A model generated the notes under the pieces. That model worked only from the letters and a program-made list of their open reading frames with translations. It was not told the DNA's origin and did no database searches. A stretch of DNA of 63,051 nt, filler included, from Olpidium bornovanus S191 (lineage: Eukaryota; Fungi; Olpidiomycota): the NCBI GenBank assembly GCA_017911155.1. It is 31 parts of 31 records of this genome, joined end to end, with 100 filler letters (N's around TTAATTAATTAA, not from the genome) between each part and the next. Parts side by side here need not be neighbours in the genome. Positions count along the whole stretch, not along the records: positions 20,334 to 22,968 come from JAEFCI010001529.1; 30 more parts are not named here. One strand, 5' to 3'. Positions within the stretch are counted from its first letter, which is position 1. Every line of letters starts with the position of its first letter. Below are positions 20,234 to 23,082 of the stretch, piece by piece. The position numbers were made by a program, and so were the translations under genes.

Positions 20234-20726
20234 NNNNNNNNNNNNNNNNNNNNNNNNNNNNNNNNNNNNNNNNNNNNTTAATTAATTAANNNNNNNNNNN
20301 NNNNNNNNNNNNNNNNNNNNNNNNNNNNNNNNNGCGGAGGGGGAAGGAGATTATCCGTCCAAAAAAACAAAAAAAAAATACACGGGCAAGTGGCCTGAAA
20401 AGCAATTCGATGAGATAAATAATTAAAAGCGAAGTCTATGCGTGTAATGCATGTTTTGTTCTGCCGCGGGGCGGCCCGAGTGCGCTTCGGCGCCGAATTC
20501 CTCGCCGGCGGAAAATTAGCACTTTTGCGTGTGCCGGCAGGGGCCGGGCGGTGGGGGAAAGCCGCTCTCGCAGAGGTGGAAAGGGCGGGTGTCGTCCGCT
20601 CGAACTTCCTCGTGCGGCCGTTTTTCCCGCCGATGGGCACACTCCCCCAGAGAGCGCCCCAGGGAGATCTTTCGCAAGCCGGCGTGAAAGCTTATTTTCA
20701 AAATCTCCGCCGTTTGCTGGTGCTGC

Positions 20727-22587
20727 TCAGACGTAATGCGCCTCTTTCTTGCGCTCATCGTCCAAAGACTCAGGGTCGTCAAACATGTGGTCTGCCGGCG
20801 GCGCCTTGAGGCCCGTCGCGACTTCCATGTCCATCTCTCCTTCCCAGACTGCAACGGCCATCGCAGCGATGCAGTTTCCGCAAAGGTTGACGACCGTTCT
20901 GGAACAGAAAAAGAGTGTTTACGCTCACGTTGTCAGGATTAAACGGCACAAAGGACGCGCAACCTGGCAAGATGGTCCTCAGCCGTCTACTAACCGTGCC
21001 ATATCCATGAACGCGTCCACACCAAGAATGATGTTGACGGCAGCGACGTCCATACCGAATGGATCGACCATCGACAACAGCAGCATGTAAGATGCTCGCG
21101 GGACCGCCGCGACGCCCTTGCTTGTAAGCATGAGCATCAACATCATCTAGAACGCAGAAAATCCAGCGGACGTATTTGTAATCAGTTCCGAAGTGACGCG
21201 GTAAGCAAGCAAACACCCTCCACGTACCTTCAACTGTTCATTAAGAGGCATATCCATCCCAGACGCCTGGGCAGCAAAAACGCTCGCGACTCTGCGGGTT
21301 TTAATGGTTACGCGGAGTTAGCGTCGGTCGGGCCGACTAAAACAAAAAAGGAGGGCGGAAACGACACTGGCGTCTGAAGAAACGTCGAGACGGCTTACGC
21401 AAGGTGAAGCGTTGTCCCGTCAAGGTTGAAGCTGTGACGAGGAAGCGACGAGTCAGCGACGAGTACAAAAAATTCACAATCCGAAAGCCGCCAGAAAAAA
21501 AAGCGCTTTTATCGAACCTATATCCTGTCGGCAGCACGAAGCGCACAATGTGGCTGGGAATGCCGAAACGCTCGAGGTTCACCATCGCCTGCGGCAATGC
21601 TGCCTCGGAACTGGTGGTGCAAAACCCGATGAATGCGGGCCGGCGCAACGTTTTCAGGGCATTCGTGAACGGGATTCGGCACAGTAGGAGGACCGGCACG
21701 AAAACGATGATCACGAAGATGAACAACGAGAGGAAGAGAGTGGCGACGAGCTTCGCGAGGCTGGCAAGGATAGCGATGCCGACTTTGGAGATTGTAAACG
21801 CCAGAGAGGCGGCGACGGCCACGGGGGCAAACAGCATGACAAGGTTGGTGACCTTGAACATGATTTGGGAAAGGCTGTCGAGGAACTCGAGCATGGGCCT
21901 GCGGTGTTGGGCCGGCGTCATAACCGTGGCTATGCCGAAAAGGATGGCGCACATGACGACGTGAAGGACATTGTTTTGGGCCGCGGAGTGGAAGAAGCTG
22001 TCTGTGACGACGTGGCCGACGTTCTCTCCAAACTCGGAGTTCCAATTCAAACGTTTCCCCTTGGCGGCTTGGGCTTCCCTGGAGACTCCCTCGAGGGACA
22101 CGCCGACGCCGGGCTACTCGAATGACCCCCCCCCACCCAACCGCGACGCCCGGCCCCAAAAACCGAAGAGCAAAGTCAGCGACCGCCGGTTCCGGGCTCA
22201 GGGCAGGCGAGAATAACGCGAGTTGCTCAGCCGAAGCGCTCGCCAGTCCTTCACCTTCAAGATGTTGACCATGGTGAGCCCAACCGCGAGGGCGATGGTG
22301 GTTGCAACTTCGAAGTAGATGAAACTTTTGAGCGCCAGCCTACCCAGCCTCATAATGTCGTCTCCGTGGCCTGCTATACCAACCACGAGCGTGGAGAACA
22401 TCAGCGGGGTTATCAGGCACTTGACGGCGAAGATGAACGCCTTGGCGAGATCTCCGAACACGGCATTGAAGTCCGACGGGAGGAACAACCCAGACAGGAC
22501 GCCGGCCACGGCTCCCAGGAAGATGAACACGGAGAGGTTCAAGCCTCGCCGCAGGAAGCGGAGCACTCTGGCAACGATCGACGCCAT
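20727..22587 (-). CDS. Dicarboxylate/amino acid:cation symporter (DAACS/SDF), bacterial GltP/DctA-like, 6 exons
   Basis: Complete spliced ORF MASIVARVLRF...PLMFSTLVVGIAG...GRLALKSFIYFEVATTIALAVGL..VNILK|PGVG...FCTTSSEAALPQAM..LERFG...FVLPTGY|SFNLDGTTLHLA|VASVFAAQASG...|MLMLTSKGVAAVPRAS...ILGVDAFMDMAR|TVVNLCGNCIAAMAVAVWEGE...HYV*. All five introns are GT-AG. Confidence 0.92.
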
Positions 22588-23082
22588 CCAGAAAAAGACG
22601 GAGGCGAACCACGGCGGGAGGGGAGCGTGGAGACGGAGGGGTCGCGAGCAAAAAAAGCTTTTTGCGTATTTGACCGCGGCCGCAGGCAACGGAGAAACAG
22701 TGGAAAGGTGAGGCCGCGGCGGGCGGAGAGGCGCGCCTTCTTATGTGCCCGCCGGGCCCAGTGGGCCGGCGCGCATTCCGGCGGGCGGGAGGCTCGGAGA
22801 GGGCGCGGCGCCCCCCAAGGAATGGGGACAACGGGGGGGGCGCCGGTGTCCGCTGCGGACGAAGGGGGGCGGGAGGGGTAAGGGGGCCGTCATAAGAGAG
22901 AATTTTTAAGGGGGCGAAAAATTCTCCCCGCCAACCCGCGCCCCCCCCCCCCCCCCCCCCCCCCCCCCNNNNNNNNNNNNNNNNNNNNNNNNNNNNNNNN
23001 NNNNNNNNNNNNTTAATTAATTAANNNNNNNNNNNNNNNNNNNNNNNNNNNNNNNNNNNNNNNNNNNNCATGGCTTGTTCGG

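Follow-up and report, generated by a model that had tools for sequence, protein, structure and literature searches.

A spliced, GltP-like transporter gene of Olpidium bornovanus in a clade of early-diverging fungi and oomycetes of likely bacterial origin

The window analysed here is a stretch of 63,051 nucleotides (nt), filler included, from the assembly of Olpidium bornovanus S191 (GCA_017911155.1). One of its pieces, at positions 20334-22968 (JAEFCI010001529.1, 2635 nt), holds one gene only, which lies on the minus strand from 22587 to 20727 and encodes a transporter of the DAACS family. The gene is intact, transcribed and correctly spliced, and it belongs to the normal gene complement of early-diverging fungi and oomycetes and is no Olpidium innovation. 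Taken as a whole, the evidence is in our judgement quite probably best explained by an expressed gene for a GltP-like H+ glutamate/aspartate importer, in a fungal clade that would stem from one ancient bacterial transfer. A deposited and named entry for the protein already exists, the gene being the known locus of KAG5462846.1 (449 amino acids (aa), "glutamate-aspartate carrier protein", Olpidium bornovanus; P0121 in our protein set).

The coding sequence runs from an ATG at 22587 to a TGA stop at 20729-20727, and its six exons make up 1350 nt which, translated exon by exon, give 449 aa and the stop. All exon translations are exact contiguous substrings of KAG5462846.1, and the split codons (n=3) yield its residues S310, A321 and R393; analyses of the full-length protein used this deposited sequence, matched to the window exon by exon. 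A first-pass annotation of the window had proposed the span 20727-22587, with five GT-AG introns and an intact frame, and this matches exactly the structure given here, down to junctions seen in assembled contigs. The motifs that it quoted are likewise all present: FNLDGTTLHL (21430-21401), TTSSEAALP (21618-21592) and TSKGVAAVPRAS (exon 5). The parts of the gene are as follows, with residues of the archaeal transporter GltPh given as equivalents.

22588-22807, minus strand: 5' leader, transcribed, at least 220 nt (run X1 contig spanning 22255-22807)
20727-22587, minus strand: whole coding sequence of the DAACS transporter, 449 aa, identical to KAG5462846.1 / P0121 (translation, PF00375)
22255-22587, minus strand: exon 1, 111 codons, phase 0, with the codon of A95 (GltPh T92) at 22305-22303 (translation, Pfam, alignment)
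22114-22254, minus strand: intron 1, 141 nt, GT..AG (junction 22113>22255 in runs X1 and X2)
21518-22113, minus strand: exon 2, 596 nt, ending within the Ser310 codon (translation, Pfam, alignment)
21612-21592, minus strand: hairpin 1 (HP1) motif SSEAALP in exon 2, its Glu equivalent to GltPh S279 (alignment)
21432-21517, minus strand: intron 2, 86 nt, GT..AG, phase 2 (junction 21431>21518 in run X1)
21399-21431, minus strand: exon 3, 33 nt, with M311L and Y317H in GltPh numbering (translation, alignment)
21427-21404, minus strand: NLDGTTLH, N312 to H319, in exon 3 (alignment)
21292-21398, minus strand: intron 3, 107 nt, GT..AG, phase 2, splitting the Ala321 codon (junction 21291>21399 in run X1)
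21228-21291, minus strand: exon 4, 64 nt (translation)
21147-21227, minus strand: intron 4, 81 nt, GT..AG, phase 0 (junction 21146>21228 in run X1)
20995-21146, minus strand: exon 5, 152 nt, in which the transmembrane helix 8 (TM8) motif begins (translation, Pfam, alignment)
21122-21090, minus strand: hairpin 2 (HP2) motif SKGVAAVPRAS in exon 5 (alignment)
21005-21003, minus strand: codon of D390 (GltPh D394), exon 5 (alignment)
20899-20994, minus strand: intron 5, 96 nt, GT..AG, phase 2, splitting the codon of Arg393 (GltPh R397) (junction 20898>20995 in runs X1 and X2)
20727-20898, minus strand: exon 6, 56 codons and TGA, with T394, N397 and N401 equivalent to GltPh T398, N401 and D405 (translation, alignment)
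20876-20874, minus strand: codon of N401, exon 6 (alignment)
20334-20726, minus strand: 3' untranslated region (UTR), at least 393 nt, transcribed up to the edge of the piece (run X1 contig spanning 20334-20847 and continuing beyond the piece)

Contigs of run X1 carry all five junctions (20898>20995, 21146>21228, 21291>21399, 21431>21518, 22113>22255) at the exact predicted borders, and the segments they skip read CT..AC on the plus strand in 5/5 cases. Run X2, with 11 substitutions relative to the window, contains the first and last of these junctions (20898>20995, 22113>22255), while an intron-free transcript contig of a ~93% identical relative (L087, which encodes P0001) reproduces all of them. 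Two raw-read RNA runs (X21, X24) contributed no reads on the piece and do not bear on strand, transcription start or level of expression. The X1 contigs that cover 22255-22807 and 20334-20847 set the lower bounds for the leader and the 3' UTR of the mRNA, and the sequence recurs across runs of several studies, root metatranscriptomes included. Compared with L087 and summed by exon, the ratio of non-synonymous to synonymous divergence (dN/dS) is 0.154 (dN 0.035, dS 0.229), and in 6/99 alignment columns conserved at 90% or above the Olpidium protein departs from the consensus (P148T, G210A, Y238F, Y319H, P375D, V407A). The gene is under purifying selection and functional; a decaying gene is ruled out by the dN/dS of 0.15 and by so few departures at conserved columns.

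The product belongs to PF00375 (SDF; DAACS/SLC1, TC 2.A.23). Exons 1, 2 and 5 each exceed the gathering cut-off of 27.9 bits on their own (54.1, 143.6 and 35.5 bits; 1.7e-14, 1.1e-41 and 7.8e-9) and together span positions 1-368 of the 387 in the profile, and an ESM Atlas feature search returned "PF00375, Bacteria". Residues 20-420 of P0121 align with solved transporters, namely the reconstructed ancestor Anc-Int (PDB 9BGZ, 6e-76), GltPh (1XFH, 1.2e-45) and GltTk (5DWY, 6e-43), an alignment that takes in HP1, the N-x-D-G-T of TM7, HP2 and TM8; since it runs end to end, an elevator mechanism is expected. In solved structures D394 is the ligand of the substrate amino group, and R397 binds the side-chain carboxylate (PMC12668577). 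Both are kept (P0121 D390 and R393), as are T398 (T394), N401 (N397) and the substrate ligand T314, which is aligned with T316; the acidic-amino-acid ligand set is complete. Changes are found at T92 (A95), S279 (E281), M311 (L313), D405 (N401) and Y317 (H319). The published signature of the proton-coupled (Ext-H) class consists of a hydrophobic residue in place of [T/S]92, M311L and D405N, with S279E as the putative protonation site (PMC12668577, Reddy et al. 2025), and all of it (4/4: T92A, S279E, M311L, D405N) is present in the window protein. Where the archaeal transporters named above, which are Na+-coupled, have NMDGT, D405 and T92, the proton-type replacement is found in the window protein at every site. 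In an alignment that included a true GltP (L075), the site and signature states are common to 28-29 of 29 eukaryotic and 38-39 of 39 bacterial rows.

The animal SLC1 proteins (EAAT1-3, ASCT1/2) are of the same superfamily and core fold, and TM7-HP2-TM8 can be aligned with them, but their similarity is much lower (alignments limited to residues ~158-408, with E 1e-32 to 1e-24, where the prokaryotic type reaches 1e-45 to 6e-76), they exceed the window protein by about 100 aa and they have NMDGT and Asp at 405 where it has NLDGT and Asn. The fungal clade is not derived from animal SLC1. The first-pass annotation had called the motifs bacterial and not of the animal type, which is borne out by NLDGT, by Asn at 405 and by the closer prokaryotic-type alignments.

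We read the window protein as a proton-coupled glutamate/aspartate symporter, GltP-like and not a dicarboxylate carrier. Going by its site residues and the published signature, it would most likely sit in the fungal plasma membrane and import L-glutamate and L-aspartate with protons, as a trimeric-elevator DAACS/SLC1 transporter of the bacterial proton-coupled class. It resembles the bacterial H+ symporters of the Ext-H class (E. coli GltP, Bacillus GltT) in Pfam family, in length, in having no extra domains, in D394, R397, T398 and N401 and in all four proton-class signatures, and it lies inside this class in trees. It differs from them in the His at Y317 and in an insertion after TM3, and in that its function is a prediction from sequence. 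Its gene, moreover, is eukaryotic and spliced. Nor is it an orthologue of GltP: it scores 289.9 bits with the NCBIfam GltP equivalog (NF008440), against a cut-off of 638, where a Pantoea GltP control (L075), which shares the D...R-T motif of TM8 with the window protein, reaches 770.6 bits. No N-terminal organelle-targeting extension was found in the protein, whose N-terminus aligns with the short basic N-termini of the bacterial proteins, adds nothing to them and so gives no evidence for targeting.

A C4-dicarboxylate carrier like DctA, which would move succinate, fumarate or malate and not acidic amino acids, is a reading that we consider unlikely. It draws on the NCBIfam DctA subfamily (NF002461) being the top match, at 312.3 bits, and on the label 'C4-dicarboxylate transport protein' that sources give to some oomycete relatives; NLDG, GN and the Ser-Lys-Gly style of HP2 are also common to DctA and the window protein. 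That score is nevertheless far under the cut-off of 513, which the DctA controls P0289, P0287, P0301, P0286 and P0329 pass with 539-673 bits. All five of these controls read S-x-x-R-A or S-x-x-R-S in TM8, with Ser at 394 and Ala or Ser at 398, and DctA-class proteins are thereby without the amino-group ligand, whereas the window protein reads D-M-A-R-T. Its Asp and Thr are those of GltPh, Anc-Int and true GltP, and D394 binds the substrate amino group (PMC12668577). With a GltP-like site (Asp 394, Thr 398) in place of a DctA-like one (Ser, Ala/Ser), C4-dicarboxylate import is unlikely; of the earlier suggestion that the gene could import glutamate, aspartate or C4-dicarboxylates, the part on acidic amino acids agrees with the retained site residues and the remainder is made unlikely by the absence of the DctA site.

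The His in place of the usual Tyr of FNLDGTTLYL, which had been pointed out in the first-pass annotation, is real and lies at the equivalent of GltPh Y317 (H319). It recurs elsewhere, in Cladochytrium (the only other case among the fungi compared) and in a single bacterial representative. The Tyr of GltPh makes a cation-pi contact with R397 (PMC12668577), and by analogy H319 may possibly alter affinity or pH dependence. The insertion after TM3 reads FGEN and occupies residues 139-142 of P0121 (window about 22032-22021), in the loop that follows the helix; it is present in both Olpidium versions and absent from 6 other aligned sequences (4 fungal, 2 planctomycete).

In careful trees (LG+C20+F+G4 with posterior mean site frequencies, PMSF) the eukaryotic sequences form one clade, with 100/100 in one tree and 100/99 in a larger one (43/43 rows). 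Olpidium pairs with Neoconidiobolus (95/95, then 100/94 in the larger tree), the two being joined by Basidiobolus (98/92), which nearly agrees with the published placement of Olpidium next to the non-flagellated fungi (PMC7865070). When the tree is rooted with two Na+-type representatives and GltP, the eukaryotic clade lies ~11 nodes deep among bacteria, with nodes on the path at 100/100, 100/99 and 99/99, and an approximately unbiased (AU) test in which the 57 bacterial rows were forced to be monophyletic without the eukaryotes gave a delta lnL (log-likelihood) of 80.6 and p = 0.0009. The nearest bacterial group is rich in Gemmatimonadota (join 86/77), with Planctomycetota and Verrucomicrobiota also near, and most of the named bacterial relatives (40-54% identity) belong to Gemmatimonadota, Verrucomicrobiota, Planctomycetota, Bacteroidota and Acidobacteriota; the trees do not single out a donor phylum. 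A bacterial origin of the clade is likely on these grounds, and as the protein falls in a broad eukaryotic clade which is itself nested in bacteria, any transfer would have preceded the separation of these fungal phyla. The first-pass annotation had set grouping with a broad eukaryotic clade against nesting within bacteria, and the phylogeny of PF00375 returns both. Its proposal of an ancient horizontal acquisition is therefore carried by the nesting in bacterial proton-type lineages, with the amendment that the event, if real, would predate the split of the fungal phyla and is not specific to Olpidium. A literature search found no paper on this clade or its origin.

The placement went through several trees. 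A first tree, of word-search proteins of 142-451 aa, left Olpidium unresolved beside Planctomycetota, a placement that changed when Zoopagomycota, Mucoromycota and chytrid sequences were added. A pair formed by Phytophthora and Phlyctochytrium bullatum fell outside the eukaryotic clade in one tree and inside it in two later ones, stably so only after extra oomycete and chytrid copies had been included. The Olpidium branch is long (1.6-1.7 substitutions/site). Oomycete copies lie within the chytrid copies (89/72 in the larger tree), which looks like transfer between chytrid fungi and oomycetes.

Results on distribution rest on the best 120 or 150 matches listed and not on exhaustive genome searches. 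A profile search returned homologues of 46-54% identity in Syncephalis, Thamnocephalis, Basidiobolus, Neoconidiobolus, Dimargaris and Dispira. Searches with representatives added Mucorales (Cokeromyces, Cunninghamella, Dichotomocladium), Mortierellomycotina (Modicella, Podila, Lunasporangiospora), Blastocladiomycota (Blastocladiella) and the chytrids Phlyctochytrium, Clydaea and Cladochytrium, so that the family is present in five fungal phyla (Chytridiomycota, Blastocladiomycota, Olpidiomycota, Zoopagomycota, Mucoromycota) and in oomycetes. A search from the Phytophthora member P0274 brought up a large subfamily common to oomycetes and chytrids, whose oomycete proteins (Phytophthora, Pythium, Saprolegnia, Aphanomyces and downy mildews; P0274, P0425-P0517) are 57-68% identical to the chytrid copies. 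No member from Dikarya, animals or other protists was among the matches listed, which agrees with the earlier remark that DAACS transporters lie outside the usual Dikarya repertoire. Two relatives differ in architecture. P0283 (Phlyctochytrium bullatum, 1039 aa) has its transporter domain at residues about 567-991; more than 550 aa precede it, which points either to a fused N-terminal part or to a gene model that was merged. In a bacterial cluster around P0264, which includes a Crocinitomicaceae metagenome-assembled genome, versions of 576 aa have about 150 additional aa N-terminal to the transporter domain.

The window protein and its orthologues (Neoconidiobolus thromboides P0224, Basidiobolus P0161, Syncephalis P0018, Cokeromyces P0257, Blastocladiella P0262, Phytophthora P0274) form one clade, at 46-54% identity, and share site residues and length class; Olpidium differs by its long branch, Y317H and five introns. 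The Basidiobolus genes lie on contigs of 172 kb and 31 kb and adjoin Vps35 and a DEAD-box helicase gene, and such large contigs and neighbours, together with spliceosomal introns at other sites, indicate that the orthologues are truly fungal. Most of these genes have 0, 1 or 2 introns, at sites other than Olpidium's five: none in Neoconidiobolus thromboides, Basidiobolus meristosporus, Basidiobolus ranarum and Dimargaris cristalligena, a single one, near the N-terminus and in a shared position, in Syncephalis and in Thamnocephalis, one in Phlyctochytrium arcticum, two in Cokeromyces recurvatus and six in Blastocladiella britannica (L090, gene at 1001-2856). Intron 3 of Olpidium (21292-21398) coincides in site and phase with one of Blastocladiella britannica (both in phase 2 and within the Ala codon that follows NLDGTTL(Y/H)L), and no other coincidence was found, the remaining 14 mapped introns all lying apart. 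Under uniform insertion the chance of such a match is ~4% (5 Olpidium against 10 other sites, ~1260 positions), and more if insertion is biased; the site may mark an old intron or a coincidence. Although that one site is shared, the Olpidium introns look lineage-specific.

Some further features of the locus and its versions were recorded. Intron 1 holds a 9-G homopolymer (minus strand; window 22120-22140), and the end of the piece (22940-22968) is a run of about 25 C at which reads seem to be cut, probably the cause of the assembly stop. Two upstream ATGs, at 22776 and 22893, lie in or near the transcribed leader and share the register of the main ATG; that at 22776 opens an upstream open reading frame (uORF) of 11 codons (22776-22741) ending in TAA, and as an X1 contig reaches 22807 the mRNA may include this uORF. 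Exon 2, used in a word search, brought up P0001 (439 aa, from a Logan contig, 92%), whose source is L087 (L087:109-1428, run SRR10938836), and P0002, a fragment from Olpidium bornovanus. There are thus three Olpidium-type versions (P0001, P0002 and P0121), mutually 93-94% identical and two of them binned to O. bornovanus, which may represent paralogues, haplotypes or strains. In the deposited model of P0002 the part from the end of exon 2 up to and including exon 4 is missing, probably an annotation gap.

Other histories of the gene were weighed against an ancient transfer into fungi. Bacterial contamination or an annotation artefact might be thought of, as, outside the fungi, the nearest relatives come from bacteria of soil and fresh water (about 50% identity), yet we give it next to no credence: a reading-frame scan found no single bacterial-style open frame across the whole gene in the window piece, the UTRs are long and the product falls in a clade with other fungal genes. 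Contamination is ruled out by the removal of all five GT-AG introns in transcript contigs of run X1, as the first-pass annotation had held from the introns and frame. The assembly is a binned metagenome, made from zoospores that had been washed off cucumber roots and were not axenic (PMC7865070), and the contig could then belong to another eukaryote of that wash, such as a chytrid or zoopagalean fungus, a suspicion fed by the short length of the contig (2635 nt, with this gene alone) and by the three versions. We regard this as quite improbable, given a tree position beside Entomophthoromycotina and close to that expected for Olpidium (PMC7865070), the recurrence of the sequence in runs of several studies, root metatranscriptomes among them, and the binning of two versions to O. 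bornovanus by their depositors.

Transfer into the Olpidium lineage itself, followed by intron domestication as an adaptation to intracellular parasitism, had been the suggestion of the first-pass annotation, and bacterial-type motifs, a long branch and five introns missing from most orthologues all fit it. We now think it very improbable, because Olpidium is nested among the other fungal orthologues in a 43-row eukaryotic clade of five fungal phyla, pairs there with Neoconidiobolus and Basidiobolus near its published position (PMC7865070), and has one intron site in common with Blastocladiella. No link to intracellular parasitism was seen either. The gene is also carried by genera that we take to be free-living, among them Mortierella relatives, Basidiobolus and many chytrids. 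At the other extreme, the gene might be an ancient vertical one, from an opisthokont or eukaryote ancestor for example, its nesting being a rooting or long-branch artefact or the trace of transfer from eukaryotes to bacteria. The monophyly of the eukaryotic sequences, a clade that holds both fungi and oomycetes, and the fact that without a root this clade is merely one side of a branch would suit such a history. It seems improbable to us, though less so than a foreign contig, in view of the depth of nesting with the Na+-type and GltP outgroups, the AU result against bacterial monophyly, the position of the oomycete copies within the chytrid copies and not as sister to all fungi, and the lack of animal, plant or other protist members among the matches listed. 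The clade also shares all the derived proton-type substitutions, which have been placed after the split of bacteria and archaea (PMC12668577).

Several points weigh against an ancient bacterial transfer of a glutamate/aspartate importer, the reading that we prefer. The trees were rooted with archaeal and animal SLC1 sequences left out, the group forced in the AU test was chosen after the tree had been seen, and the exact bacterial sister is weakly supported (86/77, and 55/15 one node deeper). The absence from Dikarya and other eukaryotes is that of the best matches listed, and the DctA profile scores slightly above that of GltP (312 vs 290 bits). Transport, coupling ion and membrane location are all predictions from residues and alignments, and the contig, of 2.6 kb and from a binned metagenome, is assigned to Olpidium through its tree position and not through marker-gene linkage.

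The simplest history would be a single transfer from a bacterium to an early fungal ancestor, with vertical descent thereafter, lineage-specific gain of introns (five in Olpidium) and probable loss in Dikarya. A fuller scenario can be offered only tentatively, at somewhat less than even chances for all its parts together: a soil or freshwater bacterium related to Gemmatimonadota, Planctomycetota or Verrucomicrobiota would have passed the gene to a very early fungus; all sampled zoosporic and 'zygomycete' phyla would have kept it, chytrids would have relayed it to oomycetes, and Dikarya would have lost it. In Olpidium, fast evolution and intron gain would have been accompanied by replacement of the Arg-clamping Tyr by a titratable His, a change that might have adjusted affinity or pH dependence to life in root cells.

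The story of a parasite-specific bacterial acquisition thus falls, and is replaced by that of a bacterial-derived, proton-type importer shared by early-diverging fungi and oomycetes. As such the gene would provide a dated case of an old transfer of a transporter from prokaryotes to fungi, in which independent intron gain can be compared between lineages. For Olpidium, an uncultivable, virus-vectoring parasite of roots, it is a candidate route for the uptake of host glutamate and aspartate.

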